Below the pieces are notes generated by a model. It did no database searches. It was not told the origin of the DNA and saw only the letters and a program-made list of their open reading frames with translations. 64,000 nucleotides of DNA from sequence record NC_048048.2; one strand, given 5' to 3'. Positions within the stretch are counted from its first letter, which is position 1, and every line of letters begins with the position of its first letter. Positions 46,056 to 63,156 of this stretch are shown in pieces. A program made the translations under genes and the position numbers.

Positions 46056-46082
46056 TTAACCTTAAGGCCGCGTTAAGGTTAA
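46056..46082. promoter_or_regulatory. extended CtrA-type box (example; exact N7 copies also near 47122, 47797, 49537, 51660, 54325, 56380, 57734, 63014)
   Basis: TTAACC-TTAA-N7-TTAA-GGTTAA. Confidence 0.8.
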
Positions 46083-46183
46083 GCCCGCCCAGGCCCGTAA
46101 AAAGATGCAAGAAACCTGTTGACACGCATGGAAGGCCTATGCGAGAACAGGGCTCAACACCAACGCCAGCCGGGAGACACCCC

Positions 46184-46774
46184 ATGGCCCTCGTCACCGA
46201 ATCCTTTGTCGTCGATCTGGCCTGCGGGCGCGCCCTGACCAACGGCGAGCGCCGCATGGTCGCCGCCGTGATCGACTCGCTTCTCGACCCGCATTTCAAG
46301 TCGACCGCCTGGGTCAAGGGCGGCGACCATCGCGAGGCCGTCCACTACTGCGACCGCGTGACGCCCTACAGCCTGCACGGCGAGAACGCCAACGCCGCGC
46401 GCGTGCGCACCGAGGCCCTGACCACCCGCGACCATGACGCCCCCGTCCTGCTGTCGCTGTCGGTCGGCGACACCATCGGCGAAATCGCCCGCTTCTACAC
46501 CATCGCCGCCGCTGTCGAATATCTCGACGGCAACCCCGATATCGATCCGACCTCGCTGCACATGGGCGCCTACACCATTGACGCCCCGTTCGGCGTGGCC
46601 AATGACATCGAGGCTGACAAGCTCCTCTATGACCTGGGCTATCGCCTGCACGCCATGGCCGGCGGGTCCTGGACCTACAGCGATCCGCAGGGCCGCCTGT
46701 GGGACGGCGGCGGCAAGCGCGAAGCCGTGGTCATGATCGCTCTGAAGCAAGCCGCCGACGCTGAAGAGGCCTAA
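46184..46774 (+). CDS. cassette gene, hypothetical
   Basis: GGGAGACACCCC leader. Confidence 0.8.
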   Translation: MALVTESFVVDLACGRALTNGERRMVAAVIDSLLDPHFKSTAWVKGGDHREAVHYCDRVTPYSLHGENANAARVRTEALTTRDHDAPVLLSLSVGDTIGEIARFYTIAAAVEYLDGNPDIDPTSLHMGAYTIDAPFGVANDIEADKLLYDLGYRLHAMAGGSWTYSDPQGRLWDGGGKREAVVMIALKQAADAEEA

Positions 46775-46779
46775 GGCCC

Positions 46780-47103
46780 GTGAAGCGCCGTCACGCCCTC
46801 TTCCTGTCGGTGATCGCTTCGGCGCCCGACGTGGTGATCCTGCAAGCTCCGGCGCACTTCCTGCGCTGGAGCGACCACCGCAAGGCCATCCTGGCGTTCA
46901 TGCGCCAGACCTACGGCGTCAAGGCCGCCGACGTTCACGCCGTCGAAGGCGTCGCCGGCTATGCCGAACCCGACCCGACCGACGACCCCGCCGTCCTGGC
47001 GCGCTTTCAAGCCGCCTTCGCCGGGTCTGACAACTTCCCCAAGGTCGCCCTGGCGGCCTGGGACGGGCAGGCCTATCGGCTGGTCCGCCGGCCTCTGGCG
47101 TGA
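46780..47103 (+). CDS. hypothetical protein
   Basis: GTG start after upstream stop. Confidence 0.65.
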   Translation: MKRRHALFLSVIASAPDVVILQAPAHFLRWSDHRKAILAFMRQTYGVKAADVHAVEGVAGYAEPDPTDDPAVLARFQAAFAGSDNFPKVALAAWDGQAYRLVRRPLA

Positions 47104-47227
47104 GGCCGCCACCGCCCAGGCTTAACCTTAACGTGGCGTTAAGGTTAAGGCCGAAAATAGTTCAAGAAAGCTGTTGACAGCATAGGAGGCTTATGCGAGA
47201 AAGGCTCATCGAAACGGGAGACACCCC

Positions 47228-47743
47228 ATGGACGACACCTATCCGCCCCTGACCCCCGGCCAGCAAGCCGCCCTGGTCGCCTTCGCCGACCAGCATGGCG
47301 GCCTGGGCGAGGCCTGGAAAGAGGCCCTGAGCGACGCCTGGAGGACGTGCAGCGAGCCCGATGCGCTCAAGGCCGACCTGCGGACCATCCGCAACACCTA
47401 TGGCCCCTCCTGGCTCTATGACGAATACGCCTGGGGCTGGCGCCCGACCCTTCCCGACTGGGAGCGCGCCGGCCGCTGGACCGACACCCCGCCGCAGCCG
47501 ACGCCGGGCAAGGCTCGCTGGAGCGCCGCCTTCGACCCGCCGGCCATCGGCGACCGGGTGCGCGTGACCACCAACGGCCTGGGCTGGGCGCGGGTCACCG
47601 GCTACTTCGTCGAAGCCGACTGGCTGGGCGTGATTGTCAAGCTGGAGGCCCCGGCCGACTGGTATGTCAAACAGAACGGCGGCAACGTCCCCGGCCACAG
47701 CTTCGGGACCGAGATCGCCCTGACCGACCCCGCGACCGACTGA
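47228..47743 (+). CDS. cassette gene, Trp-rich hypothetical with SH3-like C-terminus
   Basis: conserved leader; PAIGDRVRVTTNGLGWARV. Confidence 0.8.
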   Translation: MDDTYPPLTPGQQAALVAFADQHGGLGEAWKEALSDAWRTCSEPDALKADLRTIRNTYGPSWLYDEYAWGWRPTLPDWERAGRWTDTPPQPTPGKARWSAAFDPPAIGDRVRVTTNGLGWARVTGYFVEADWLGVIVKLEAPADWYVKQNGGNVPGHSFGTEIALTDPATD

Positions 47744-47923
47744 CCTGGACGGCCCTGGCTGGGAGACCAGCCGGGGCGAGGCCTAACCCGGCGCGGTTAA
47801 CCTTAACCGCCCATTAAGGTTAACCGCCGGCGCCCTGGGGCGGGCGAAAGAAAATGCAAGAAAACTGTTGACACGCATCTGAGGGCTATGCGAGAAAGGG
47901 CCATCGAACAACGGAGGCCCCTC

Positions 47924-48766
47924 ATGGCCAAGCTATTCAGCGACCTTCAGGACCTTGCCAACTCGACCTATGTCGTGCGCATCGTCGACAATGGCGGCCA
48001 GAGCGCCGACCGCTACACGATCGTCACCGCCGATGGCGACTATTACGCCTACAGCGCCAATCCCGCCCATCCCCAAGGCGTGGGCCTGAGCGGCGAGGGC
48101 ATCGACCCGCAAGTGCTGGTCGACTGGGTGGAGCGCGGCGAAGCCGTCGACCTGACCATCGGCGAGCTACCCGAGGCCGCCGCCCGCTGTCTGCTGGCGT
48201 CGATCAACGCCAGCGTCGAGGACTTCCTGTCGGCTGTCGAGGACCCGACCAGCAACGCCGTGGCCCCGACCCGCGAAAAGGCGGAGATCAATGACGGCGT
48301 GATGGATTGCTTCGGCAAGGGCATCTATCGCGTGGGCGAGGGTTTCGCCGTGCGCATGGATGGCCTGGACGCGGGCGATGATCGCGGCCCCTTCATGAGC
48401 GCTGTCGAGGCGGTCAAGGCCACCCTCCCCGATGAATACGCCTGGGCTGGCGAGGAATACCTGTCGCCGCGCGACATGACCAAGATCACGCCCGAAGCCA
48501 AGCCGCTCGTTCTGGTCCACGCCCTGGAGGCCATTCGCGACTATGAATATCAGCGCGACAACCCCGGCTCGTTCTTCGACGGGCTGAACGAGGACGACAC
48601 TGACGCGGGCCTGGGCATCGTGCGCCGCACGCGCTACCTGTCCAAGGTCACCGATGATGCGACCATCGTCGGGCTGATCGGCGAGGCGCCGGCCTTCGCC
48701 CTGGCCCATGAATGTCTCGACCAACTGTGGACCCTGGCGCAAGAGCGGTGGGAGGCGGGCCAGTGA
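47924..48766 (+). CDS. cassette gene, hypothetical
   Basis: GGAGG SD; RIVDNGGQSADRYTIV. Confidence 0.8.
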   Translation: MAKLFSDLQDLANSTYVVRIVDNGGQSADRYTIVTADGDYYAYSANPAHPQGVGLSGEGIDPQVLVDWVERGEAVDLTIGELPEAAARCLLASINASVEDFLSAVEDPTSNAVAPTREKAEINDGVMDCFGKGIYRVGEGFAVRMDGLDAGDDRGPFMSAVEAVKATLPDEYAWAGEEYLSPRDMTKITPEAKPLVLVHALEAIRDYEYQRDNPGSFFDGLNEDDTDAGLGIVRRTRYLSKVTDDATIVGLIGEAPAFALAHECLDQLWTLAQERWEAGQ

Positions 48767-48966
48767 GCGCCCGCGAACGCCGCGCCCTCTCCGAACTGCT
48801 GGCCCTGTTCCACGCGGTCAACAGCGGCCACGTCAAGGGCCGCAACCCCTACGCCTTCCCGGCCGTCAAGCTCGCCAACGAGGTATTGACGGGCGACCCG
48901 CTGGACGGGGTTTCCACGTCGCCGAAGCCCTGGACCGGCATCGCGAGGCGGACGGCAAGGCCTTGA
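48763..48966 (+). CDS. hypothetical protein
   Basis: GGAGG SD, GTGA overlap. Confidence 0.65.
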   Translation: MSARERRALSELLALFHAVNSGHVKGRNPYAFPAVKLANEVLTGDPLDGVSTSPKPWTGIARRTARP

Positions 48967-49070
48967 TTTTCGAGGTCGGCGGTTGCCCGGACGGCTGCTT
49001 GCTGTCCTACAGCGGCGCGGTTCCGCGCTGCGTCAACTGCGACACCGAATATCCCGAAGAAAACGGTTGA
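48963..49070 (+). CDS. 35-aa Cys-rich peptide
   Basis: TTGA overlap; GCPDGC...RCVNC. Confidence 0.45.
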   Translation: MIFEVGGCPDGCLLSYSGAVPRCVNCDTEYPEENG

Positions 49071-49121
49071 CAGCATAAGGGAGCTATGCGAGAAAGGGTC
49101 ATCAACGGAGACACCCCGCCC

Positions 49122-49262
49122 ATGTGGACCGAAAAGACCTTCAAGACCCGCGCCGCCAAGGAGGCCTGGATCGCCCGCAATGAAGACCGCTATCAGATCG
49201 TCGAGATCGTGGTCTGCAACGCCTACGGCGTGACCTACAAGCCCCTCCGACGCGTCTACTAG
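49122..49262 (+). CDS. 46-aa cassette gene
   Basis: conserved leader; MWTEKTFKTRAAKEAW. Confidence 0.75.
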   Translation: MWTEKTFKTRAAKEAWIARNEDRYQIVEIVVCNAYGVTYKPLRRVY

Positions 49263-49272
49263 GAGACCTCGC

Positions 49273-49464
49273 ATGATCCCCGACTCGGTCCGTAACCCGC
49301 AAGATCATTGGACCCCCATCGCCACCCGCGCCAAGGCTGACGCCCTGGCCTATCGCTACAACCAAGATGACGCCGGCCCCGGCCTCTACGAGGTCCACGA
49401 AAAGGGCGAAAGCTTCGCCATCGCCTACTATGACGAAGACGGCGCCTTCTGCGGCTACGTCTAA
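49273..49464 (+). CDS. 63-aa hypothetical protein
   Basis: AGGAG SD. Confidence 0.75.
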   Translation: MIPDSVRNPQDHWTPIATRAKADALAYRYNQDDAGPGLYEVHEKGESFAIAYYDEDGAFCGYV

Positions 49465-49481
49465 CCCGCTCCTGTCAACTT

Positions 49482-49518
49482 GAAGGCCGGCGCCGCTCTC
49501 CTGGCGCCGGCCTTTTTC
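49482..49518 (+). terminator. intrinsic terminator
   Basis: AAGGCCGGCGCC-loop-GGCGCCGGCCTTTTT. Confidence 0.85.
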
Positions 49519-49673
49519 TTGCCCGCCGCCTGGGTCTTAACCTTAAGGCGAGATTAAGGTTAACGCCGCCTTAAGGTTAACCGGTGCCCCGCATCCCGCC
49601 CGGATGCAAAAAACCTGTTGACACGCATTTCGACCCTATGCGAGAAAGGCGACGAACACGGGAGACACCCCTT

Positions 49674-50672
49674 ATGACCACGACCATTCCCGGCGCCGAG
49701 CATACGATGATCGGACAAGCCGCCTATCGCTCGACCAAGCGCCCCGACCAAGTGCGCGAGATGGCCTATGGCGCGTTCCCGGCCGCGACGTCGGACTCGC
49801 CCTTCGCCGTCAAGCCGGCCTGTGGCAAGGTCCCGAGCGCGCGCGTGCTGGAGGACTTCGACCCCGCCGACGTCTTCACGACCAGAGCCAATGATCGCGG
49901 CGGCTTCTATGCCTCCGCCAACTTCGGCGGCTCTGAGGTGTCGTGGATCAGCATCGCCGGCTATGGCGACACCGAGGAGGCCGCCCGCGCCGATCTCATG
50001 GCCCGGTTCATCGCCGACCGCGACGGCAAGGGCAAATTTGGCCCTCACCATCCCCTGGTCGGCTATGACTGGGGCTATAAGCTCGCCCCGTTCTGGGACA
50101 TGCTGGAGCGCGAGGCCGCCATTCGCCAGCCCTTCAAGCGCCAGCTTTACCTGGGCAAGCTGAAGTCCGGCCGCCCTAATCCCAAGGGCTTTGACGTGTT
50201 CGTCGATGTCGAATGGACCGGCGTGCGCCTGTCGCTGTCGGGCGTCATCGGCCCCAAGGCCAATGGCAACGCCTGGGACGGCGCAGGCCAGATCGTCGGC
50301 AGTCTCAAGCGCAAGGACTTTCTGGAGTTCGCCCCGTCCTGGCATTATGGATCGGCCCTTGACGGTCTGGTCCAGGCCTGGACCCGCTGGCACCTGAACG
50401 ACCTGCGCGCCGGCACGCTTCGGCAGGAAGACCACCTGCGCGGCTATGAGGCCAAGCGCAACATTGAGCAGGCCAAGGCCGCCGGCGCCCATTCTCTCGA
50501 CGCCACCCGCGCCGAACTGGCGCGCGTCCATATGGAGCCCGACACCTGGGAGCGCCACAACGGCCGGCCCTATAGCTACGGCTCCGCATGGCTTCGCGAG
50601 GAGGTCCCCACCTACGTTCTCGACTTCCTGCGCAATCTCCCCGCCCCCACCAAAATCAGCCCCTGGAGGTAA
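49674..50672 (+). CDS. cassette gene, hypothetical multidomain
   Basis: conserved leader; WTRWHLNDLRAG...YSYGSAWLREEVP. Confidence 0.8.
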   Translation: MTTTIPGAEHTMIGQAAYRSTKRPDQVREMAYGAFPAATSDSPFAVKPACGKVPSARVLEDFDPADVFTTRANDRGGFYASANFGGSEVSWISIAGYGDTEEAARADLMARFIADRDGKGKFGPHHPLVGYDWGYKLAPFWDMLEREAAIRQPFKRQLYLGKLKSGRPNPKGFDVFVDVEWTGVRLSLSGVIGPKANGNAWDGAGQIVGSLKRKDFLEFAPSWHYGSALDGLVQAWTRWHLNDLRAGTLRQEDHLRGYEAKRNIEQAKAAGAHSLDATRAELARVHMEPDTWERHNGRPYSYGSAWLREEVPTYVLDFLRNLPAPTKISPWR

Positions 50673-50679
50673 CCCGCCC

Positions 50680-51114
50680 ATGGCCATCAACACCGCCGGC
50701 CTCGTCGGCAAGCTCAAGGAAGCCCTCGCCGCCGCCCCCAACCTGACCCTATGGGCCAAGGAACGCGGCCTCTTCCATCAGAACGTTTCGGCCGCCGCGC
50801 GCGGCGACACCGTGCCGCAAGAAAGCATCGCCAAGGCCCTGGGCTTCCGACGCGTCCACGTCCAGGCCTATCTGGCGCCGGGCGAAGCCCTGCCGCTCCT
50901 GCCGCCCGGCTGGGAGGAGGTGCTTCCCGGTTCGGCGACCCCGGTCGACTGGAAGCCCCGCGACAAGGCCGCCGCCCCCGCCCCGCGCCGGGTCGGTTCG
51001 CCCGACCAGATGGCCAAGGCCCGCGACGCGCGCCGGCCGCGTTCCGCGCCGGTCCAGCCCCCGGCCCAAACCGCCGGCAAGCCTCGCCGCAAGAAAGTGC
51101 AAGAAACCGGTTGA
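50680..51114 (+). CDS. XRE/Cro-type HTH protein
   Basis: NLTLWAKERGLFHQNVSAAARGDTVPQESIAKALGF. Confidence 0.7.
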   Translation: MAINTAGLVGKLKEALAAAPNLTLWAKERGLFHQNVSAAARGDTVPQESIAKALGFRRVHVQAYLAPGEALPLLPPGWEEVLPGSATPVDWKPRDKAAAPAPRRVGSPDQMAKARDARRPRSAPVQPPAQTAGKPRRKKVQETG

Positions 51115-51164
51115 CAGCATAAGGCGGCTATGCGAGAAAGGCTCATCACTTCTGGAGCAAGCCC

Positions 51165-51374
51165 ATGGCCGCCTTCATCTGCACCGCCGATCTCAACGCC
51201 CTGGTCGAGGACATCGCCTATGACGTGGAGATGGAAGACCGCGCCGCCGAGGAACTCGACGGCCTGGACTTTGGCGACCGCTGTTACTACGGCGACCGCG
51301 CTTACCATGGCCAGCTTGAGCTTGCCCGGATCATCGAGACGGCCGTCGCCGCTCATCCCATCCTGTACGCCTAG
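51165..51374 (+). CDS. acidic 69-aa cassette gene
   Basis: GGAG SD downstream of promoter. Confidence 0.75.
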   Translation: MAAFICTADLNALVEDIAYDVEMEDRAAEELDGLDFGDRCYYGDRAYHGQLELARIIETAVAAHPILYA

Positions 51375-51390
51375 CAGAGGAGGCGCCGCT

Positions 51391-51603
51391 TTGCCACGCT
51401 ACCGCACCGACTACAGCGAAGACGACGGAAAAACCGTCATCATCGAGGAAGGCCTGACGAGGACGCAGGCCATGCAAAAGGCCGCGATCCTGTCGCGCAA
51501 GCACGGGACCGCCTACGCCGTCGCCTCCGACGACAAGGGCCGCGACACCGGCCAAAGGGTCTATGCTGACGGCCGGTTCAGCTACCAAGACGACAAGTTC
51601 TAA
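51391..51603 (+). CDS. 70-aa hypothetical protein
   Basis: AGGAGG SD before TTG. Confidence 0.7.
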   Translation: MPRYRTDYSEDDGKTVIIEEGLTRTQAMQKAAILSRKHGTAYAVASDDKGRDTGQRVYADGRFSYQDDKF

Positions 51604-51606
51604 GGC

Positions 51607-51634
51607 AAGAGGCCCGGAGCGATCCGGGCCTTTT
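51607..51634 (+). terminator. intrinsic terminator
   Basis: AGGCCCGG-loop-CCGGGCCTTTT. Confidence 0.8.
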
Positions 51635-51779
51635 GTCTGTCCCCCGCCCGGCGATAACCTTAACGCCGCGTTAAGGTTAACCCCCTGGGACGGGGGGCGC
51701 CGCCGCAAAAACTGCAAGAAAACTGTTGACACGCATTTCGACCCTATGCGAGAAAGGCGCATCAACCACGGAGGACAAC

Positions 51780-52511
51780 ATGTCCACGCACCCGCTGATC
51801 GCCGCCGCCCTGGCCAATCTTCGCGAAGGCCCGGCCATGGTCGCCGGCCCCGACCACGTCACCAAGGTCACGTCCTACGAACTGACCCGCGCGGTCATGT
51901 TCAAGGCCGCCGACCAGATCGAACGGGCTCTGAGCGATTTCCCCGCCCCGCCCGCCTGCCTGGGCGCCTTCCTGATGACCGAGTTCGACCGCCTGGGCGA
52001 CAACTGGGGCGCCCTGGGCGACGCCATCACCGAAGGCGAGGCCCTGGCCAATGCTGAAACCGTCCTGGCGTGGTACTTCAACGCCACCCGTGACGACGGC
52101 GACCCGGACGGCTACACGCTCAAACTCGCTGGCGCCCTGCCCAACGACGCCGAGGCCGCCCGCATCCGCCGCGACTACGCCGCCGCCCTGGAGGCGCAAG
52201 AGCAGGCCAAGGCCGCCGAGGCTCGCGCCTTCGCCGACCGTCACGCCGCCCTAGGTTCGGCCGAAGCCGTCGCCGACCTCCTGGGCTCGCTGTTCGACAC
52301 GCCGCGCACCGCCGCCGAGGCCCTGGGCTACAGCTTCCATTTCGTCCCGGTGATCGGCGGCGAGATCGAGGGCGAACGCGCCTGGATCGGCGAGGACAAG
52401 GCCGGCGAGCGCGTCCATGGCGACTACGCCAGCGCCGACCAAGCCGCCCGCGCCGCCCTCATCTACCACGTGCGCGCCAACCAAGCCGCCCAAATCGTCA
52501 AGGACGCCTGA
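51780..52511 (+). CDS. cassette gene, Ala-rich hypothetical
   Basis: GGAGG SD. Confidence 0.8.
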
Positions 52512-52513
52512 CC

Positions 52514-53140
52514 ATGACCGCCGCCGCATCCCTCTTCGAACAAGCCCAGATCGAGGCCGCTCAAGCCGCCATCGACGCCAACACCGCGCGCGTTGGGCTG
52601 GAGACCGAGGACGCCACGCCCGGAACCGACCTTTTCCACCTGCTGGGCTCGCTGCTGACCTGGGCCGACGCCTGGGCCGTGGACTTCGACGACATCCTGT
52701 CTCAGGTCCGCGAACCGGTGAACCTCTCCAAGACCGTGACCCGCTTTGATCCGGCCACCTATGGCCAAGACCAGCGGCTTGCGGCCATCCGCGCCAATCT
52801 CGACCAGCGCAACACCCCTTCCGTTCCGGTCCTGACCCGCGACGAGGCCGAAACCGAGGCCATGCGCGATCTCGCCGCCGTGGTCGGCAAGGTGATCAAG
52901 GTCCACGATATCACCGGCTATTTCGGCGAGACGGGCCAAGAGGACTTGCGCCCCCACGACGGCGCGCCGGCCTTTTCGGTGATCGTCCTGCCGTCCGACC
53001 GGGACGACGTGATCTACTGGAATGACGAGCATCTGGACGTTCGGTGGAACGTCACCCCCGCGCCGGGCGAAACCCGCCTCTACGAACTGCGCTCGCTCTG
53101 GGTGTTCGGGCGCGGCTATGTCATCGAAGGCGAGGGCTGA
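52514..53140 (+). CDS. hypothetical two-domain protein
   Basis: coupled ORF; DLFHLLGSLLTWAD. Confidence 0.75.
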   Translation: MTAAASLFEQAQIEAAQAAIDANTARVGLETEDATPGTDLFHLLGSLLTWADAWAVDFDDILSQVREPVNLSKTVTRFDPATYGQDQRLAAIRANLDQRNTPSVPVLTRDEAETEAMRDLAAVVGKVIKVHDITGYFGETGQEDLRPHDGAPAFSVIVLPSDRDDVIYWNDEHLDVRWNVTPAPGETRLYELRSLWVFGRGYVIEGEG

Positions 53141-53142
53141 TC

Positions 53143-53451
53143 ATGGCCATGCCCCTGGGCTTGCGGACCACCGCCACCAGCTACGCCATTGACGTGGACG
53201 ATGACCAGTTTCTGGCCATGATCCAGGCCGAAGGCTACAAGGGCGGTGATTTCGAGCCGTCCCTGTTCGACAAGCTGCAAAAGACCCCCGCCCGCGACAT
53301 CGAATATAACGGCCACTTCGGCGCGTCGGTCTATTTCACCCTCACCGAGGAAGACGACACCCCCGCCCTACGCGCCGAGCTTGGCCGGATGATCGCCGAA
53401 CACCTAACCCTCTGCGTCGCCCACATGGCGACCTACGACAAGGACGCCTGA
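53143..53451 (+). CDS. hypothetical protein
   Basis: coupled ORF. Confidence 0.75.
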   Translation: MAMPLGLRTTATSYAIDVDDDQFLAMIQAEGYKGGDFEPSLFDKLQKTPARDIEYNGHFGASVYFTLTEEDDTPALRAELGRMIAEHLTLCVAHMATYDKDA

Positions 53452-53453
53452 CC

Positions 53454-53938: not shown

Positions 53939-54002
53939 CAAGGCTGTTGACAGCATCAAGGCCCTATGCGAGAAAGGCTCATCGCCACCGGAGACACCCG
54001 CG

Positions 54003-54269: not shown

Positions 54270-54282
54270 CCTCCTCCCTTCG

Positions 54283-54310
54283 AAAGGCCCCGCGCGGGCC
54301 TTTCTTTTTG
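54283..54310 (+). terminator. intrinsic terminator
   Basis: GAAAGGCCC-loop-GGGCCTTTCTTTTT. Confidence 0.8.
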
Positions 54311-54479
54311 CCCCGCGCCTGGGGTTAACCTTAACGCCGCCTTAAGGTTAACCCGGCCGGATCGTTTTTCGTCTTTTGTGTCGGGCCGTCTTTCGTTTTC
54401 CGTGTCGAGGTGCAAGAAAGCTGTTGACAGCATAAAAGCCCTATGCGAGAAAGGCTCATCGCAACCAAGGAGCCCGACC

Positions 54480-55586: not shown

Positions 55587-55590
55587 GTCA

Positions 55591-55620
55591 AGGCCCGCCC
55601 ATCCCCCTGGGCGGGCCTTG
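55591..55620 (+). terminator. intrinsic terminator
   Basis: AAGGCCCGCCCA-loop-TGGGCGGGCCTT. Confidence 0.7.
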
Positions 55621-55729
55621 TCCTGGGCGATCGGCGTTAACCTTAACGCGCAAGAAAACTGTTGACACGCATTGCAGCCCTATGCGAGAAAGAGCGCCTA
55701 GGCCGCTTTGGCCCCTGGAGACTTGCGTC

Positions 55730-56311
55730 ATGGAACACCGCGACTTCGTTCCCCACATCATCACCGCCCGCACCGTGGATGGAACCGTCTACTACGAGTC
55801 CAGCCACTGCACCGCCTTCCATCTGGGCTATGCCCGCGCCATGGACAAGGCCGACGCCGAGCGCCGGGCCGCCGCCTGGAAGCGCGCGGAAAAGGACGGC
55901 GCCCCGCAAGCCACCATCGACGAGGGAACCTATGGGATCACCGTCGTGGCCACCACCTGGGAGGCCCTGGACAAGGCCCGCGCCCATCGCGCCGAGCTTG
56001 AGCGCCTGGAGGCCAATTTCCTCGCCGAGGAGGCCCATGACGACCAGTTCGACGACTATGAAGAACCGGTCATGAGCCCCGAGGATATCGCTGCCGAGGA
56101 AGAGGCCGCCCGCGACTATCTGGCCACCATCCAGCCCCATAAGGCCGGCGACGTGGTGCGGATCACCGACGAGGGCCATCCCCATTTCGGGGCGCTGGCC
56201 ACCGTCGCCGAGGCCGAATGGAGCGGCTATCTCGTCCTTGACCTGGGCGCGGGCCTGACCTGGGGCTGGGCGACGGGCGTGCAATCGACGGCCGATTTCC
56301 CCCAGCCTTGA
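55730..56311 (+). CDS. cassette gene with KOW/SH3-like C-terminus
   Basis: GGAGA SD; KAGDVVRITDEGHPHFGALATV. Confidence 0.75.
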   Translation: MEHRDFVPHIITARTVDGTVYYESSHCTAFHLGYARAMDKADAERRAAAWKRAEKDGAPQATIDEGTYGITVVATTWEALDKARAHRAELERLEANFLAEEAHDDQFDDYEEPVMSPEDIAAEEEAARDYLATIQPHKAGDVVRITDEGHPHFGALATVAEAEWSGYLVLDLGAGLTWGWATGVQSTADFPQP

Positions 56312-56331
56312 AAGCTGGCCTCGCGCCAGCA

Positions 56332-56362
56332 AAAAGGCCCGTCCCCTGGCGGGGCGGGCCTT
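56332..56362. terminator. terminator between convergent genes
   Basis: AAAAAGGCCCG...CGGGCCTT hairpin. Confidence 0.65.
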
Positions 56363-56419
56363 GTCCGGTCCGATCGGGATTAACCTTAACGAGAGATTAA
56401 GGTTAACGCGCCCTTAAGG

Positions 56420-56665
56420 TTAACTGGTGGCGTTCTTGCGCGTCGTGGCCTGGGGATTGGCCTTGAGCCATGCGTCGGCTTCCGTGCGGGTCGAGAACGG
56501 CGCCCCGCCAATGCCCTGCGTGCCGTCATCCCATTGAATGGTCCAACCCACGTCCTTGATTTCCCAATCCTCCGCCACGCCATGGGGAATCGGCGTATGA
56601 AGCGCGATGCGGGTAAAGGGCGCGCGCTTGAGTTGACGGATGCGCGCCGGAATGACTTGCGGCAT
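56420..56665 (-). CDS. 81-aa hypothetical protein on the minus strand
   Basis: AAGGA SD; own minus-strand promoter TTGACA(56744)-N16-TACATT. Confidence 0.75.
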   Translation of the reverse strand: MPQVIPARIRQLKRAPFTRIALHTPIPHGVAEDWEIKDVGWTIQWDDGTQGIGGAPFSTRTEADAWLKANPQATTRKNATS

Positions 56666-56843
56666 GTGTGGAATTTCCTTGACAAAGGCCTTGCCCCATG
56701 GGCGGCCCGAAAGGCGAATGTAGCAAGCGGCGCTTTCGTGTCAAGAAATGCGACATGGGCTAGAATCCTGTTGACACGCATTGCGGTCCTATGCGAGAAA
56801 GATCGGGCAAAGGCGCATCCCGCGCCGCTGGGAGACACCCCGC

Positions 56844-57614
56844 ATGGACCTGACCACCTTTACGGCCAAGGCTGATTTCGTGCTCTGCAATGAGCCGGTG
56901 ACCATCACCGTCAAGCCCGCCGGCCGCCCGCTCTACCTGTCGTTTTCCATCGACCAGATCGGCATGATCGGCGGCGCCGAGGAGCTTTACGCCAAGGCCG
57001 AACAACACGGCGTCGAGGACCTGATAACGGTTCTCAACATTTCCAACGTCCTGTCGCTGAAGTCCATCGAGACCTATGACGACGAAGACCGCGAGGCCGT
57101 CGAAAGCCTGCGCTACGCCCTGCTCATGCTCGACGGCGAGCGCTACGCTTCGGATGTCCAGTTCGAGGACGTGGACGAGGCCGAGTTTTCCAACCGCGAC
57201 GACACCATTGACAGCCGGCAAATCGTCGAGCGGGTCGAGGTGCTTCGGAGCGCCCTGGAAACCGCCGGCTTCGACACCGCCGACCTGTCCGCCCTGGAAG
57301 ACCTCGACGCCGACGAAGCCGTCAAGGACGCCGACCAGCGCGACGCCTTCAACGCCATCCGCGAGGAATTCCTGATCCTGGCGCGCATGGTCGAGGAGGG
57401 CGGCAACTACGGCGAGGATTGGCGGTTCGGCGCGACTCTGGTCCGCGAATCCTACTTCACCGAGTTCGCGCAAGAAGAGTGCGAAAGCCTGGGCTTCATC
57501 TCCAAGGACTTCCCGTCCTGGATCGCCATCGACTGGGAAAAGACCGCCGAAACGATGCTACACGACTACACCGAAATCGACTTCGACGGCGTGAGCTACT
57601 ACGTCCGCGCCTAG
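56844..57614 (+). CDS. acidic ArdA-like antirestriction/DNA-mimic protein
   Basis: D/E-rich; C-terminal YFTEFAQE...SWIAIDWEKTAETMLHDYTEIDFDGVSYY resembles the ArdA C-terminal IDYExxARDL pattern. Confidence 0.55.
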   Translation: MDLTTFTAKADFVLCNEPVTITVKPAGRPLYLSFSIDQIGMIGGAEELYAKAEQHGVEDLITVLNISNVLSLKSIETYDDEDREAVESLRYALLMLDGERYASDVQFEDVDEAEFSNRDDTIDSRQIVERVEVLRSALETAGFDTADLSALEDLDADEAVKDADQRDAFNAIREEFLILARMVEEGGNYGEDWRFGATLVRESYFTEFAQEECESLGFISKDFPSWIAIDWEKTAETMLHDYTEIDFDGVSYYVRA

Positions 57615-57677
57615 GTGAAGCTCCTCGAAGGCGGCGGCCTGCTCGCGCTCTGCTTCCTCCTCTGGTTGCTTCACTAA
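57615..57677 (+). CDS. 20-aa hydrophobic peptide
   Basis: MKLLEGGGLLALCFLLWLLH*; GTG directly after the upstream TAG. Confidence 0.65.
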   Translation: MKLLEGGGLLALCFLLWLLH

Positions 57678-57716
57678 ACCCGGCCGGCGTCCATGACCTG
57701 GGCGCCGGCCTTTTCT
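57678..57716 (+). terminator. intrinsic terminator
   Basis: GGCCGGCG-loop-CGCCGGCCTTTT. Confidence 0.75.
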
Positions 57717-57774
57717 TACCGCGCCGATCGGGGTTAACCTTAACGCCGTCTTAAGGTTAACGGCGGGCCTGGAG

Positions 57775-57877
57775 GCGAGGGCGTCAAGGCCGCGAGCTAG
57801 GATTACACGCGATGGCTTAGCCGGCGTCCAGCCGGCGGCGCCTTCGACCACCGCGAGGCGGCCTTGACCCTCGCAAT
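57775..57877 (-). ncRNA. candidate structured ~100-nt small RNA
   Basis: 17-bp closing stem with a 2-nt bulge, 9-bp inner stem with G-U pairs only on the minus strand, GCCGGC hairpin; minus-strand TTGACA-N16-CGAGAT promoter at 57903-57876. Confidence 0.6.
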
Positions 57878-57988
57878 CTCGCCGATCCGCGACCAAGTGT
57901 CAACCGTTTTCTTTTTCCAAGAAACCTGTTGACACGCATCGAACGCCTATGCGAGAAAGACTCAACGTCAACGCCTGGAACCCTATCC

Positions 57989-58645
57989 ATGCCCCGCACC
58001 GTCACCAAACAGGTCTACACCTTCAAGGAACTGAATCCCAAGGCCAAGCAAAAGGCCATCGAGTGGTATCGTGGCCTGAACGATCAAGACTCCGGTTGGT
58101 GGGATTTCGTCTATGACGAAGCCGACCGCATCGCCGAAGCCTTCGGGATCACCCTGCGCCGCAAGGAAGCCGGCAAGCCCAATAGCGGCCCGGACATCAT
58201 GTTCACCGGCTTCTGGAGTCAAGGCGACGGCGCCTGTTTCCAAGGCCGCTACGAGTCGCCCCAAACCCCGGCCGTCGAAGCCTTCGCCGCCCTGGGGATC
58301 GAAGACGCCACGCTCAAGGCTCTGGCCGCCCGCCTCGACGCCCTGAGCGCCAAGGTGCGCTTGATCAGCACGGTCAAGCACTCCGGTCACTACTATCACG
58401 AGTATTGCACCGACTTCGAAACCGAGCGCATGGTTCCCGACGACGCCGGCGACGACTTCGATATCTACGATTTCGACCACGAGGACGAAAAGGAACTGAT
58501 CGACATTCTTCGCAGCTTCATGAAGTGGATTTATCGCCAGCTTGAGGCCGTGGACGAAGATCGCAATTCCGATGAGACGATCAGCGAAACCCTGACCGAC
58601 TCCGATTACGAATTCGAGGCGGACGGCTCGCCGACCAACGACTAG
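57989..58645 (+). CDS. acidic cassette gene of a widespread mobile-element family
   Basis: VYTFKEL...AKQKAIEW...WWDFVY...FTGFWSQGDGACF...YEFEADG. Confidence 0.8.
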   Translation: MPRTVTKQVYTFKELNPKAKQKAIEWYRGLNDQDSGWWDFVYDEADRIAEAFGITLRRKEAGKPNSGPDIMFTGFWSQGDGACFQGRYESPQTPAVEAFAALGIEDATLKALAARLDALSAKVRLISTVKHSGHYYHEYCTDFETERMVPDDAGDDFDIYDFDHEDEKELIDILRSFMKWIYRQLEAVDEDRNSDETISETLTDSDYEFEADGSPTND

Positions 58646-58700
58646 GCCAAGCCCGCCGCGCCCGGCCTCAACGCCGGGCGCGTGTCGGGTTTTGGTTTTT
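58646..58700 (+). terminator. intrinsic terminator
   Basis: GCGCCCGGC-loop-GCCGGGCGC followed by T-rich tail. Confidence 0.6.
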
Positions 58701-58819
58701 CAAGGTCCTGTTAAGGTTAACGAAAAAAGCCCTCGGACGGCCTGAGAAAAACGCAAGAAAACTGTTGACACGCATCCAAGCCCTATGCGAGAAAGGCTCA
58801 TCGCAACGGGAGACACCCC

Positions 58820-59107
58820 ATGACGACCCAAGCCAAGAAGCGCCGCAAGCGCTACCCGCCCAAGAGCGACGCGGCCAAGGCCCGCGCCGCCGCCAAGAGC
58901 AAGGCGTTCTTCGCCCGTCACGCGCTCAAGGCCACCGAGGCCACGATTGCCGCCATGAAGGCCGGCGATCAAAAGGCCGTCCAACGCCACGCCAAGGACG
59001 CCCGGCGCCTGACCCGCTGGATGAACCACAAGCGCGACATCGCCGCCGCCTTCGCGGCCGTCTTCAACATTCGGGCCGCCGCCCAAGCCCTGAGAGCCGC
59101 CGCATGA
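58820..59107 (+). CDS. basic Ala/Lys/Arg-rich cassette gene
   Basis: conserved leader. Confidence 0.8.
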   Translation: MTTQAKKRRKRYPPKSDAAKARAAAKSKAFFARHALKATEATIAAMKAGDQKAVQRHAKDARRLTRWMNHKRDIAAAFAAVFNIRAAAQALRAAA

Positions 59108-59319
59108 CCCGTCGCCCTGCCTTTCTGACCGTCCTGGGCGGGATTGGCCTCATCCTGGCCAGCTTCGTCCTTTCGGCCGCCAGCGCCCCGGAAAAGCGGG
59201 TTCTCGTGGGTCAATACTGCGACGGCGACCCCGTGCGCCTCTACGGCCTGGAAGACGGCGAGGAAGCCGCGCAAGCGTGCGCCATCGTCGAAGTCCACGC
59301 CCTGCCCAAGGGCTTCTGA
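59104..59319 (+). CDS. small secreted or membrane protein
   Basis: MTRRPAFLTVLGGIGLILASFVLSAASA; two Cys. Confidence 0.65.
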   Translation: MTRRPAFLTVLGGIGLILASFVLSAASAPEKRVLVGQYCDGDPVRLYGLEDGEEAAQACAIVEVHALPKGF

Positions 59320-59321
59320 CC

Positions 59322-59579
59322 ATGGCCGCCCCGAACGACAGCCGCGAGGAGCCGGTCAAGGTCGAAGACCTCAAGGGCGGCATGATGTGCGATCTTGAGG
59401 GCGACATGTACGCCGACAACGCCGGGCGCTTCCCGGAATTCGAGTTCGCCTATGCCGTCGTCGTCGAAGTCGACACGGCCCCGCGCTACGAGGCGCCGGG
59501 GACGGTCCTGGTCGAGTTCGACAAGATCACCGTGGCCTTTCCCAAGGGCCACACCCTGCCGACCATCAAGGAACCCTAG
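59322..59579 (+). CDS. hypothetical protein
   Basis: coupled ORF. Confidence 0.75.
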   Translation: MAAPNDSREEPVKVEDLKGGMMCDLEGDMYADNAGRFPEFEFAYAVVVEVDTAPRYEAPGTVLVEFDKITVAFPKGHTLPTIKEP

Positions 59580-59581
59580 AC

Positions 59582-60115
59582 ATGGAACGCCTCAACGTCC
59601 ACGTGCTGACCGTCACCTATGACAGCGGCAACCCCGTCCCGCCGTTCGTCGCCCTGGGCATGTCCAAGGAGGAACTTGACGACACCCTGGAGGCCCTGGC
59701 GCGCGAGGAAGTCGATAACCGCTATTTCGAGGAAGAAGACCTCTTAGACGACCTCGCCAAGTTCCTGACCGCCGAACGCGTCGCCGAGCTTGAGCCCCTG
59801 GGCCTGGACGCCATCGGCCTACTGACTCCGGTCGAAATCGTCGACATGGCCAAGCGCTTCGCCTCGATCACGCCAAGCTTTGACGTGCTCCCGCTCTACC
59901 GCGACCCGCCGCCCGTCCGCGCCTTCGATCTCGACGACCGCGAAGCCGCCGCCGTCCTGACCGGCCTGCGCATGATCCAAGCCCAAGGCGTCCCGGACGA
60001 TCTCGACGACCTCGCCACCAATGGCGGCGCCTTCGAGCCCCTGGACGGCGACGCCATCGACGGGCTCTGTGTGCGGATCAATTTCGACGTGACCGGCGAG
60101 GCGCCGGCCTCCTGA
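59582..60115 (+). CDS. acidic hypothetical protein
   Basis: AAGGA SD. Confidence 0.75.
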   Translation: MERLNVHVLTVTYDSGNPVPPFVALGMSKEELDDTLEALAREEVDNRYFEEEDLLDDLAKFLTAERVAELEPLGLDAIGLLTPVEIVDMAKRFASITPSFDVLPLYRDPPPVRAFDLDDREAAAVLTGLRMIQAQGVPDDLDDLATNGGAFEPLDGDAIDGLCVRINFDVTGEAPAS

Positions 60116-60195
60116 CGCAAGAAAGCTGTTGACAGCATAATCCGCCTATGCGAGAAAAGGCTGTCAACGGCGATCCCCGCCGCATGGAGACACCC

Positions 60196-60540
60196 ATGAA
60201 GTTCATCAAGACCGACATCCTCGACCACGGCCGCGCCTCGACCCTGCGCAACGCCCTGGGCACGGCCCTGGAGCGCTACACCGAAATCGGCAAGGAATTC
60301 GAGGGCTACCTGAACGACTATCAGGCCCTGGACGAGGCGGGCAAGGAAGCCTGGAAGGCCCGCAACCACTGGATCAACCCGCGCGCCCTGCCCGACCTCA
60401 AGACCCAGTTCGAGCGCCAAGCCGCCGACGTGCAAGACCTCATCAACTGGCTTGACGGCGACAAGTTCATGAACGAAGACGGCGATTTCCCCAAAGGGAC
60501 CGAGTTCACCATTGTCGCCGGCCTGATCCGCGACTTCTAA
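60196..60540 (+). CDS. cassette gene, hypothetical
   Basis: GGAGACACCC leader. Confidence 0.8.
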   Translation: MKFIKTDILDHGRASTLRNALGTALERYTEIGKEFEGYLNDYQALDEAGKEAWKARNHWINPRALPDLKTQFERQAADVQDLINWLDGDKFMNEDGDFPKGTEFTIVAGLIRDF

Positions 60541-60550
60541 ACGCCCTGGT

Positions 60551-60579
60551 CAAGGCCCGCCCTCACGGCGGGCCTTTTC
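60551..60579 (+). terminator. intrinsic terminator
   Basis: AAGGCCCGCC-loop-GGCGGGCCTTTT. Confidence 0.8.
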
Positions 60580-60734
60580 CTTGACCTCGCGCCGTTGTTA
60601 ACCTTAACGTGCAATCGTTCGCCTGTTAACCTTAACGGGACATGCCTGATCCGTTAACCATAGCCTGCAAAAAAGCTGTTGACTCGCATCCAAGCCCTAT
60701 GCGAGAAAGGGTCATCAGCAACGGGAACGATCCC

Positions 60735-61133
60735 ATGACCCAAGAATACACCGCCGAAGAACGCCAAGCCAAGTTGACCGAAATGGCCGATCACTGGCGC
60801 GAGCAACTGAAGGACGCCCAAGCCCGCCTGGACATGACCGTCCTCGTCGGTCAAGGATTCGTCTGCGCTCTGGAGCGCGATCTTTCCATGGCTATCCGCG
60901 CTGACGGTCCCGACCGCTATCGCCTGTGGCCAGTATCGGCGCGCATGGTTCCCATCCTCCACTTCACCAAACTTGACGCCATGCGGGTCGCCGCGCACTG
61001 GAATGGCAACCTCCCCGACGATAAGCAGGACCTGCGAGTCGTCGCCACCCATTACCGCGACGTGCTTCAAGCCTATGTCGAGACCGCAACGGCGCAAATC
61101 GCCTGGATCGAAGGCGGCTGCAAGGCCGCCTGA
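60735..61133 (+). CDS. cassette gene, hypothetical
   Basis: GGGA SD after promoter. Confidence 0.8.
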   Translation: MTQEYTAEERQAKLTEMADHWREQLKDAQARLDMTVLVGQGFVCALERDLSMAIRADGPDRYRLWPVSARMVPILHFTKLDAMRVAAHWNGNLPDDKQDLRVVATHYRDVLQAYVETATAQIAWIEGGCKAA

Positions 61134-61323
61134 CCTTGACGCCCTCCGGCTCCGGCCGGAGGGTTAATTTCTGCCCAGCCCGCGTTAAGGTTAACCCGCC
61201 GCCGGCCTGGGATTAACCTTAACCCGCAACCGTTTGCGGGTTAACCATTCGATGCAAGAAAGGTGTTGACACGCATTTAGGCCCTATGCGAGAAACGCCT
61301 ATCAGCAACCGGGAAACACCCCC

Positions 61324-61887
61324 ATGCCGCAATTCGTTCTCGACACTTCGGGCAAGGCCCGTGTTGGCGCCACCAAGAATTTTCCGAACGGCGTCACCAT
61401 CAACTGGAATGATCTCGACGCCTTCACCCAAGGCTATATCGAGGCGCTGTTTTTCACCGAAAATTCCCCGGCCTTCACGTCGGACGAATGGCACGGCGAG
61501 GAATGTCAAGCCGCGCTTGAGGCCGGCACGTCTGACGGCTCGCTCCCCGGTGACGCCGGTTTCGCCGACCTTCATGAAACCGCCCTGGCCACCATCGTCG
61601 AGGAGTGCGCCGCCTTCCAACGCGAAAACGCCGACCTGTTGGCGCAAGCCTATGGCCACAACTTCCCGGCGCGGGTGATCGGCGACGGCACCTTGCCCGA
61701 TTCCCACCGCCCGGCGTGGGACTATGACGAGGCGGCGGCGGGGCGGGATTTCTGGTACACTCGCAACGGCCATGGCGTCGGCTTTTGGGATCGCGGCCTA
61801 GGCGAGGTCGGCGACAAGCTTTCCGACGCCTGCCGTTACTCTGAGGTTTACGTGTCGTTCGAGGCTGACGGCAAGGTTCATCTCTAA
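61324..61887 (+). CDS. cassette gene, conserved phage hypothetical
   Basis: conserved leader; FTQGYIEAL...GRDFWYTRNGHGVGFWDR. Confidence 0.8.
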   Translation: MPQFVLDTSGKARVGATKNFPNGVTINWNDLDAFTQGYIEALFFTENSPAFTSDEWHGEECQAALEAGTSDGSLPGDAGFADLHETALATIVEECAAFQRENADLLAQAYGHNFPARVIGDGTLPDSHRPAWDYDEAAAGRDFWYTRNGHGVGFWDRGLGEVGDKLSDACRYSEVYVSFEADGKVHL

Positions 61888-61893
61888 CCCGGC

Positions 61894-61921
61894 AAAGGCC
61901 CGCTTGACAGCGGGCCTTTTT
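61894..61921 (+). terminator. intrinsic terminator
   Basis: AAAGGCCCGCT-TGAC-AGCGGGCCTTTTT. Confidence 0.85.
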
Positions 61922-62049
61922 CGTGCCTGCCCCACCTGGGTTAACCTTAACGCCAGCCCGCTTCGCCTTAACGCTCTTTTTGCAAGAAAACAGTTGACTC
62001 GCATCCAAGCCCCATGCGAGAAAAGGTCATCAACCACGGAGCGCCGCAC

Positions 62050-62424
62050 ATGGCCAAAACCGAAACCGTCGACCTCGCCCTGGTCATGCTCGATGAGCAA
62101 AAGGCCGCCCTGGGCGCCTCCCGGACCTTCACCTTTCACGAAGTCCGCGCGGCGTTCATCGACGCCAAGGCCCTGACCACGCTTGAGGCCACCTTGCACA
62201 AGATCGCTGAACACGAGTGCAACGGCTATCGCAGCGACATCACCGAACGTTTCGACATCCGCCGCCGCGACAAGGCGCAAGCCGCCGCCACGGCCATTGC
62301 CGAGCGCTACGGCCTGACGCTCGATTTCAACGGCGACCCGCGCGGTTCGGCCCTGAAGATCAAGACCCCGCACACCGGCCGTTACAACGGCTTTGGCGGG
62401 CGTGAGGATGGATGGTGCGTCTAG
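62050..62424 (+). CDS. cassette gene, hypothetical
   Basis: GGAG SD; IAEHECNG...FNGDPRG. Confidence 0.8.
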   Translation: MAKTETVDLALVMLDEQKAALGASRTFTFHEVRAAFIDAKALTTLEATLHKIAEHECNGYRSDITERFDIRRRDKAQAAATAIAERYGLTLDFNGDPRGSALKIKTPHTGRYNGFGGREDGWCV

Positions 62425-62493
62425 CGCCATCCTGACCCCCTTCCACCCCCTGTAGCGCGTCCCTCTCAAACCCCTGGCCCTAGGAGACACCCC

Positions 62494-62664
62494 ATGGCCC
62501 GCACCACCACCCACACCCGCACCGACAAGGCCAAGCGCGAGACGCTGGCGCCGTGGGAATATGACCGCCAGCACAAGGCGGACAAGAAAGCCGCCAAGGC
62601 GTGGCGCACCGATCGCCAAGGCCGCCGCGCCCTGGCCTCTTCGGACGCCTTCAAGGCCCACTAG
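62494..62664 (+). CDS. 56-aa basic protein
   Basis: AGGAGACACCCC leader; MARTTTHTR. Confidence 0.7.
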   Translation: MARTTTHTRTDKAKRETLAPWEYDRQHKADKKAAKAWRTDRQGRRALASSDAFKAH

Positions 62665-62757
62665 GCGGGCTCGAAAAAAGTTCGGCTCGATGCGAGAAAG
62701 CTGTTGACTCGCATCGAGCCCCTATGCGATAAAGGGTCATCAAACGGAGACACCGAC

Positions 62758-62922
62758 ATGACCCACCTGCAACGCGCCACCACCGACCAAGTCACCGTCG
62801 AGCACTACGCCGTTTCGGGCGGTCAACTGACCGTCACCCGCGCCCCCGCCCGCGCCCCGATCTATCGCCTGAACGGCTTCAAGATCACCTACTTCGAGGC
62901 CAAGCGTAAGCTCGCCGCCTAA
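62758..62922 (+). CDS. 54-aa cassette gene
   Basis: conserved leader. Confidence 0.75.
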   Translation: MTHLQRATTDQVTVEHYAVSGGQLTVTRAPARAPIYRLNGFKITYFEAKRKLAA

Positions 62923-62936
62923 GACCCCTCCCCGAT

Positions 62937-62966
62937 AAGGCCCCCTCCCTGGAGCGGGGCCTTTTT
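62937..62966 (+). terminator. intrinsic terminator
   Basis: AAGGCCCC...GGGGCCTTTTT. Confidence 0.7.
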
Positions 62967-63156
62967 CGTGGCCGTTAGCCAAGCGTTAAGGTTAACCCGT
63001 AGGGTTGATTTCGTTAACCTTAATGGGGCGTTAAGGTTAACGGGCCGGCCCAGGCTGTTAACCCTGCGGGCGAAGAAAGTGCGATCCTGTGCAAGAAAGC
63101 TGTTGACTGCATAAGCGTCCTATGCGACAAAGGGTCATCAACAACGGAGCTACCCG

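Follow-up and report, generated by a model that had tools for sequence, protein, structure and literature searches.

What reads the TTAA boxes that recur between the early cassettes at the right end of the Caulobacter phage CcrSC genome, and what might they do there? The window analyzed here is the 64,000-nucleotide stretch that forms this end (NC_048048.2 / MH588547.2, bases 253,490–317,489 of 317,489 bp), and all of its box units are confined to the right direct terminal repeat (DTR). The left and right DTR copies of CcrSC are identical, and a DTR coordinate is the window coordinate minus 40054. According to the record, the DTR genes, bar one, are small, on the plus strand and of unassigned function, and the host is Caulobacter vibrioides CB15; the host clade encodes CtrA, a published ctrA 5′ primer sequence matching more than 100 Caulobacterales genomes. 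A preliminary description of this DNA had seen doubled CtrA-type boxes of the form TTAA-N7-TTAA (N7 being any seven bases) at 46056–63040. We find that the repeated unit is a 10-mer, TTAAGGTTAA, that the boxes are locked in position to the terminator of the preceding cassette and not to the promoter, and that they are predicted sites for phosphorylated CtrA (CtrA~P) with a regulatory role, a reading to which we give a probability of about 0.55.

The window has 13 exact TTAA-N7-TTAA sites where shuffled sequence predicts 0.01, and the DTR holds 12 of them, compared with one in the 269.6-kb unique part of the genome. In these 12 the two TTAA half-sites stand exactly 7 bp apart, as in a CtrA site, and all 12 are intergenic by annotation, the site at 56403 overlapping the last 3 bases of gp031. 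The sole site of the window outside the DTR, at 29252–29266 (TTAATCATGCCTTAA), has no 10-mer context. The 10-mer itself is present in 38 exact copies per DTR (38 in the window, with 0.01 expected) and in three copies elsewhere in the genome, which lie at record positions 60983, 112993 and 157987; one-mismatch near-copies are rare (three). The commonest spacing of TTAA words in the DTR is by far TTAA-N2-TTAA, with 76 of the 92 words falling inside a 10-mer, whereas the true extended CtrA half-site TTAACCAT is found only 4 times, some arrays finishing in it near the promoter. N7 boxes form wherever 10-mers are spaced by 17 bp, which they are in eight (−,+) pairs and two (+,+) pairs. The exact extended palindrome TTAACCTTAA-N7-TTAAGGTTAA is found eight times (starts 46056, 47122, 47797, 49537, 54325, 56380, 57734 and 63014), and a ninth, at 51654, is exact but for one base. 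The 10-mer is the repeated unit, and the N7 sites are its by-products.

Measured against these counts, the preliminary description was right that at least nine exact N7 sites lie in 46056–63040 (there are 11) and that two of them run in tandem at 49537 and at 56380, where each array has a third unit as well. Its statement that every N7 site is flanked into the extended palindrome holds for the eight exact cases and the one with a mismatch, but what repeats is the 10-mer, and about half of its copies form no N7 box. The range it gave was too narrow: the array of 10-mers starts at 41362, and 11 copies had been missed, including the eight-copy cluster at 43134–43359. The DTR and its box groups are as follows.

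40055–64000, plus strand: right DTR, 23,946 bp (record annotation).
41362–41371, minus strand: lone 10-mer (TTAACCTTAA on the plus strand), with TTAACCAT about 30 bp upstream.
43134–43359, plus strand: densest cluster, eight exact and two one-mismatch 10-mers, all in plus orientation.
44379–44415, plus strand: two 10-mers 27 bp apart, 25 bp upstream of promoter 44441.
45481–45490, plus strand: lone 10-mer, 19 nt past terminator 45440–45468 and 25 bp before promoter 45516.
46056–46082, no strand: exact extended palindrome, N7 box 46062–46076, 22 nt past terminator 46009–46040.
47122–47148, no strand: exact extended palindrome, N7 box 47128–47142.
47797–47823, no strand: exact extended palindrome, N7 box 47803–47817.
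49537–49580, no strand: three 10-mers at 17-bp pitch forming two tandem N7 boxes, 23 nt past terminator 49484–49520.
51654–51680, no strand: palindrome whose left unit (ATAACCTTAA) has one mismatch, N7 box 51660–51674, 22 nt past terminator 51610–51638.
54325–54351, no strand: exact extended palindrome, 20 nt past terminator 54282–54311.
55637–55646, minus strand: lone 10-mer, 19 nt past terminator 55592–55624 and 15 bp before promoter 55662.
56380–56423, no strand: three 10-mers at 17-bp pitch, 19 nt past terminator 56336–56367, between convergent genes.
57734–57760, no strand: exact extended palindrome, 23 nt past terminator 57682–57717 and 168 bp before the next promoter.
58711–58720, plus strand: lone 10-mer, 21 nt past a hairpin and T run at 58667–58696.
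60598–60661, minus strand: two 10-mers and TTAACCAT at 28-bp pitch, 22 nt past terminator 60553–60582, the last 10-mer ending 43 bp before the −35.
61185–61248, no strand: two 10-mers (+,−) and TTAACCAT at 28-bp pitch, 21 nt past terminator 61142–61170.
61941–61950, minus strand: lone 10-mer, 23 nt past terminator 61896–61924.
62986–63040, no strand: three 10-mers spaced 28 and then 17 bp, N7 box 63020–63034, 23 nt past terminator 62938–62969.

Alignment of the CcrSC and CcrBL9 DTRs identifies the 10-mer, and not the N7 box, as the selected unit. The 10-mer positions are 97.5% identical, compared with 88.9% for other intergenic positions (Fisher p = 5e-9), and the N7 spacers are 64.5% identical (p = 3e-8), so that purifying selection acts on the whole 10-mer and leaves the spacer free. 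The 7-bp spacer of the palindrome at 54325 (54335–54341) is exactly reverse-complemented in CcrBL9 (cgccgcc versus ggcggcg), and that of the palindrome at 57734 (57744–57750) is nearly so, with the arms unchanged in both; therefore, neither the sequence nor the orientation of the spacer matters, and the change suggests that the loop flips between the 10-bp inverted arms. Across eight phage sequences, the center of TTAA-N2-TTAA is CC/GG in 149 of 160 cases, and the unit therefore reads TTAACC+TTAA. A CC/GG center fits the known ungapped CtrA motif, or extended half-site TTAACCAT.

Inverted spacers would also fit a view of the palindromes as, in the main, signals for recombination or shuffling at cassette borders, similar to the promoter-early stem-loop (PeSL) elements of T4-type phages and working without a regulatory protein. 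The palindromes do lie at cassette borders beside near-identical promoters and terminators, and single cassette genes are common to distant phages. Such signals would, however, need no exact TTAA word kept across phages of 48–66% GC, and they leave unexplained the lone units, the same-orientation cluster at 43134–43359, and the shift by CtrA~P of a probe from phage Delta (PMC9437464). We consider it improbable that recombination is the main role of the palindromes.

The unit is spread well beyond CcrSC. An exact-pattern scan of IMG/VR for the extended palindrome returned CcrBL9 and seven uncultivated viral contigs of 48–66% GC. The complete 79-kb phages G046 and G048 have 23 units each, clustered in about 5 kb, the 163-kb phage G049 has 28 units, and the six exact units of Delta (87 kb) are all confined to its CtrA-bound gap. 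G046 and G048 are Delta-like, having about 40 open reading frames in common with Delta; with CcrSC they have in common only distant structural and enzyme proteins and single cassette genes. Early cassettes seem to have been exchanged between phage lineages. In the RB23 DTR (for example, 4016–4090 and 5340–5420), many units read TTAGGGTTAA or TTAACCCTAA, with the inner half-site degenerate and the outer GGTTAAC kept, and there are only 4 exact N7 boxes despite 99 TTAA words; RB23 also has an extra TTAACCA about 20 bp before the A-rich stretch of the promoter. The CcrSC DTR genes gp046 (63603–63797), gp006 (44500–45123) and gp032 (56844–57611) have homologues beside box clusters of distant phages, located at Delta 1574–1759, G046 63742–64086 and G048 3881–4315.

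The position of the boxes was examined relative to both the promoters and the terminators of the cassettes. A generic sigma-70 and terminator scan was too strict for GC-rich CcrSC and missed most cassette signals, and terminators were therefore called by our own search for a hairpin followed by a T run. A search for RNA-seq runs containing CcrSC turned up only metagenome DNA runs, with small shares. The DTR has 23 near-identical plus-strand promoters, each with an A-rich AAGAAAnCTG, then TTGACA or TTGACT, then GCAT-N9/10-ATGCGA, and a GGAGACACCCC-type leader precedes the start codon after most of them. In every cassette promoter, the inverted repeat GCAT-N9/10-ATGC stands between the −35 and a weak −10-like CTATGCGA, and it may be an operator for a second regulator. 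The promoters are as follows.

46119–46144, plus strand: example cassette promoter, AAGAAAnCTG, TTGACA(C), GCAT-N9/10-ATGCGA.
Plus strand, −35 hexamer starts of promoters 1–12: 43700, 44441, 45516, 46119, 47174, 47868, 49067, 49618, 51111, 51726, 53947, 54424.
Plus strand, −35 hexamer starts of promoters 13–23: 55662, 56771, 57929, 58765, 60129, 60679, 61266, 61994, 62704, 63103, 63548.

At least one 10-mer lies within 260 bp upstream of 15 of the 23 promoters; the other 8 are box-less and mostly sit in short internal gaps that lack a terminator too. The last 10-mer ends 15–347 bp upstream of the consensus −35, the box-to-promoter distances being 15, 25, 25, 25, 36, 37, 43–45 (six times), 62, 72 and 168 bp, and these distances fall into recurrent classes with no single helical phase. 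No box overlaps or abuts a −35 in CcrSC, as it does at CtrA-activated promoters, and no half-site covers a −10 or a transcription start, as at CtrA-repressed ones, there being no TTAA in the 23 promoter cores. These data bear on the possibility that the boxes belong to classical CtrA-dependent promoters as in phiCbK, with a box that overlaps the −35 and direct recruitment of RNA polymerase by CtrA~P. Such promoters exist in related phages: phiCbK gp005 and gp018 and 14 CcrPW DTR promoters have their second TTAA in a weak −35, TTGTTAA, and the phiCbK promoters need ctrA (PMC9437464). In CcrSC, however, 23 of 23 cassette promoters have a TTGACA or TTGACT −35 of their own, 8 of them have no box, and the DTR contains no conserved −10-like element at a fixed distance downstream of the boxes. 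A classical arrangement in CcrSC is thus very improbable.

By contrast with the promoters, the terminators stand at a nearly constant distance from the boxes. A GC-rich hairpin and T run precedes 13 of the 16 cassette box groups, and the first 10-mer begins 19–23 nt past the terminator stem (21.3 ± 1.6 nt, n = 13, CcrSC). Six other phage sequences give 42 further cases, of which 36 also have a spacing of 17–23 nt between terminator and unit (CcrBL9 9/13, RB23 13/13, G046 4/5, G047 2/3, G049 3/3 and UViG_3300037350 5/5). In an opposite-orientation control scan, there were few hairpins and the distance preference was absent. A protein site at a fixed short distance past a hairpin and U tract is what a roadblock calls for, and the spacing has this form. 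The palindrome itself is not the terminator, since no T run follows it on either strand. Because the boxes are locked to the terminator and stand 15–347 bp from a consensus TTGACA promoter, they are not classical −35 CtrA boxes.

The preliminary description had placed one box per cassette, in most cassettes, between terminator and promoter. The terminator side of this holds for 13 of 16 groups; "most cassettes" amounts to 15 of the 23 promoters, and two arrays have no nearby promoter, those at 56380 (347 bp to the next plus-strand promoter) and 57734 (168 bp). CcrBL9 and RB23 both retain the array at 56380. The stop codon of gp031 (56420–56665), the sole minus-strand gene of the DTR, falls in the third 10-mer of this array (56414–56423), and the gp031 transcript therefore leads directly into the boxes and the bidirectional terminator at 56336–56367. 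In uncultivated G049, at least five cassettes have a rigid module consisting of a terminator, 21 nt, one TTAACCTTAA, N17, TTAACCAT, N18 and TTGACC. The G049 module is a cleaner version of the CcrSC layout, and six CcrSC promoters have the G049-like 43–45-bp geometry.

Which protein, then, would bind the unit? No Trans_reg_C (OmpR-type winged helix), DUF1153/SciP or GcrA domain is encoded in the whole CcrSC genome, the 45 DTR proteins contain no Pfam DNA-binding domain, and a PHROGs scan of them gave the same result. CcrSC, Delta and G046/G048 have no small protein in common (blastp E < 1e-3); the proteins common to the 10-mer-bearing phages are only of portal, capsid, tail or enzyme size. Because the sites precede early promoters, whatever binds them has to be there from time zero.

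In a CtrA-matrix scan of 499 phage genomes, Mascolo et al. 2022 (PMC9437464) described "LPEG" phages, which are pilus- or flagellum-tropic alphaproteobacterial phages with predicted CtrA sites concentrated in DTRs or gaps. CcrSC is an LPEG phage in Table S7 of that paper and has the corresponding signature, with predicted CtrA sites that are intergenic and in the DTR. Supplementary Table 6 lists its DTR N7 sites up to before 63020 with scores of 9.6–17.2, all above threshold; these position-specific scoring matrix (PSSM) scores are the published values. The best of them (17.2, Table S6) belongs to the site at 43140–43154, inside the cluster at 43134–43359. Electrophoretic mobility shift assays (EMSA) with CtrA~P and ctrA(ts)-dependent reporters are reported there for phiCbK gp005 and gp018 (activation), Delta DELTA_120 (repression) and Cp1R7A-A1, and "lytic deferment" is the proposal of that paper. 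The Delta EMSA probe that CtrA~P shifted has three units at 17-bp pitch, two of them exact 10-mers and the third a near copy (PMC9437464). Because no phage binder was found, the sites are early and the Delta probe is shifted, we favor a conserved host protein, and CtrA is the obvious candidate.

PMC9437464 already lists the boxes as predicted CtrA sites. The preliminary description was right to call them CtrA-type boxes, in a phage whose host has CtrA, and its main inference, that early gene expression is tied to the cell-cycle state of the host, coincides with a published hypothesis. The CtrA reading of the CcrSC boxes is therefore plausible and known in kind, as a prediction for the same phage. 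The available parts of that paper say nothing of a 10-mer unit or an extended palindrome, of selection on the central GG and outer half-site, or of the terminator spacing, and literature searches for the 10-mer word and for the Bertelyvirus DTR found no other relevant paper. Four points appear to be new relative to those parts: selection on the 10-mer, chance-level counts in the host, the spread to distant phages and the terminator spacing.

Several observations weigh against CtrA as the binder or against a regulatory role. About half of the 10-mers are in no N7 box, standing alone or 13, 16, 26, 27 or 28 bp apart. The palindromic sites, with CTTAA...TTAAG flanks, score 9.6–13.6, far below the best score of 17.2 (PMC9437464), the modest matrix scores being due to the C/G flanks. 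A perfect palindrome is easier to reconcile with a symmetric dimer than with a head-to-tail OmpR-type one, and the decay of the inner half-site in RB23 (TTAGGGTTAA) is odd if CtrA needs the inner N7 pair. The host makes no use of the word: 41 Caulobacter genomes contain 34 copies of the 10-mer, compared with 33 of a reversed control, which is the chance level, so that its density in the DTR is several thousand times above that in the host; TTAACCWT is enriched only about twofold in two host genomes. Activating CtrA sites are known near the −35, and the CcrSC boxes are not there. The motif may have spread by exchange and not by convergence, because the Delta-like phages have a few CcrSC DTR cassette genes. 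Finally, the terminator-to-box linkers of CcrSC show weak paralogy with one another (0.415 versus 0.331 for shuffles), and the constant spacing there is for this reason perhaps partly inherited and not selected; the AT-rich linkers of G046 and G049, compared with those of CcrSC by eye only, have no obvious similarity to them.

Many of these points would be explained if another sequence-specific protein, either a phage early or virion protein or a host protein, reads the whole of TTAAGGTTAA and the N7 box is a geometric by-product of the 17-bp spacing. In favor of such a binder, all ten positions are conserved, including the outer TTAA and the central GG, units occur alone, RB23 keeps the outer half-site while the inner one decays to TTAG, the host genome leaves the word unused, paired sites are perfect palindromes, the C/G flanks hold matrix scores down (PMC9437464), and the rule in G049 is a single 10-mer per cassette. 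On the other hand, there is no recognizable DNA-binding domain among the 45 DTR proteins, the 10-mer-bearing phages have only large structural and enzyme proteins in common, sites before early promoters need their binder at time zero, and CtrA~P does shift a Delta probe built of 10-mers (PMC9437464). Weighing both sides, we regard a different binder as unlikely, and we continue with CtrA~P.

What the data show are the sequence features, the selection, the spread among phage lineages and the spacing; we infer the identity of the CcrSC binder, the direction of its effect and its mechanism. Arrays of the doubled half-site TTAACC+TTAA would have been selected in early cassettes as sites for a conserved host protein, most likely CtrA~P. 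Where 10-mers are 17 bp apart, one CtrA dimer could occupy the inner TTAA-N7-TTAA, and longer arrays could tile further dimers. In CcrSC and its genus, the box would act from outside the promoter, in an array that opens about 21 nt past the terminator stem of the preceding cassette. At an intrinsic terminator, release takes place about 7–9 nt after the stem, and polymerase covers roughly 14–18 bp ahead of its active site. With a unit that starts 20–24 nt past the stem, a bound protein would therefore meet the polymerase front on the U tract. Bound there, the protein might detain RNA polymerase at the terminator or insulate the next cassette by keeping the polymerase from sliding into it, and it might influence the downstream promoter from upstream as well; either way, a bound regulator would feed host cell-cycle state into the cassette boundary. 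Because roadblocks stall polymerase and stop its sliding (PMC11364550), the boxes could make cassette borders depend on a bound host regulator. SciP may take part because the unit plus a 5′ G matches the SciP consensus at 9 of 10 positions. Only tentatively, then, do we propose a terminator-coupled module in which CtrA~P, perhaps with SciP, decides between stop, read-through and slide into the next early cassette.

The preliminary description had offered a second role, in which the array, acting as a sink, would titrate CtrA and thereby drive the swarmer cell into S phase. What speaks for a sink is the number of sites on DNA that is replicated to high copy number, a point that is itself inferred. 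CtrA is present in thousands of copies. With 12 full boxes per DTR, or 24 per genome, one infecting genome cannot lower a regulator of that copy number, and the strict placement after terminators, which a sink does not need, would have no role. Titration is accordingly a highly doubtful function for the array, and regulation by CtrA~P remains the reading that we prefer.

The cluster at 43134–43359 sits in a 1.47-kb non-coding gap, with an iteron-like array on one side and phased A-tract repeats on the other. The order in the gap at 42923–43460 is about eight TTGACG-N7-CATTT iteron-like units, the 10-mer cluster, and phased AAAATCAGC-type A-tract repeats. GAAAATCAG-type repeats also adjoin 10-mers in the CtrA-bound gap of Delta, and similar ones are present in RB23. 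The arrangement resembles that of Cori, which also has CtrA boxes, and the gap has the look of a control or origin region common to these phages.

That CtrA controls phiCbK-type phages has been proposed only recently, and few sites have been tested; CcrSC and its genus have a different architecture, with a strong, self-sufficient promoter that stands apart from an exactly conserved doubled box after each terminator. If CtrA binds these boxes, a cell-cycle regulator is used at gene boundaries and not at promoters, a way of acting that would be new for CtrA, and the terminator plus box would be a simple, portable part for protein-assisted termination. If CtrA does not bind, a widespread TTAAGGTTAA-binding factor awaits discovery. 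If the terminator-module reading is true, cassette insulation depends on the host cell cycle, and the module is common to several distant phage lineages whose known members infect Caulobacterales. The 10-mer is in addition a practical marker, since searching for the exact word locates the early regions of uncultivated relatives.

Among known systems, the PeSL cassettes of T4-type phages are small early open reading frames bracketed by a stereotyped promoter and a stem-loop, and they are prone to modular exchange. We know of no host-regulator boxes in PeSLs and of no sequence relation between them and the CcrSC cassettes. LacI on O1 is a roadblock that, in single-molecule work, stalls elongating polymerase and blocks its sliding after termination (PMC11364550). 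The CcrSC boxes lie at the presumed front edge of polymerase on the U tract, and the comparison is a functional analogy only. The SciP chromatin immunoprecipitation sequencing consensus, RTTAACCATR, has TTAACC in common with GTTAACCTTA (the unit plus a 5′ G), but the 10-mer differs from both TTAACCAT and this consensus in having T and not A as its eighth base and in running on into a full second TTAA.

The LPEG site clusters of PMC9437464 are the same phenomenon in the same phage, found between genes, only in the DTR, and ahead of small genes of unassigned function; the experiments reported there were done on phiCbK, Delta and Cp1R7A-A1 and not on a Bertelyvirus such as CcrSC. Delta has CcrSC-type 10-mers at 17-bp pitch that are shifted by CtrA~P, along with GAAAATCAG-type A-tract repeats as at CcrSC 43360–43460, but its units form one dense cluster in a single 1.3-kb gap instead of an array per cassette, with centers CG and CA besides CC/GG. 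Finally, phiCbK (gp005 and gp018) and CcrPW belong to the same subfamily, Dolichocephalovirinae, and also have TTAA-N7-TTAA upstream of DTR cassettes, where the phiCbK promoters are ctrA-dependent. Their box is single, TTAAC-N6-TTAA (14 sites in CcrPW and 3 in phiCbK), with its second TTAA inside the weak −35 TTGTTAA, which is the classical CtrA-dependent layout, and there are only 2 doubled units per DTR. Unlike these phages, CcrSC, CcrBL9 and RB23 have a consensus −35 of their own with the box upstream and separate, and in CcrSC that box is doubled.

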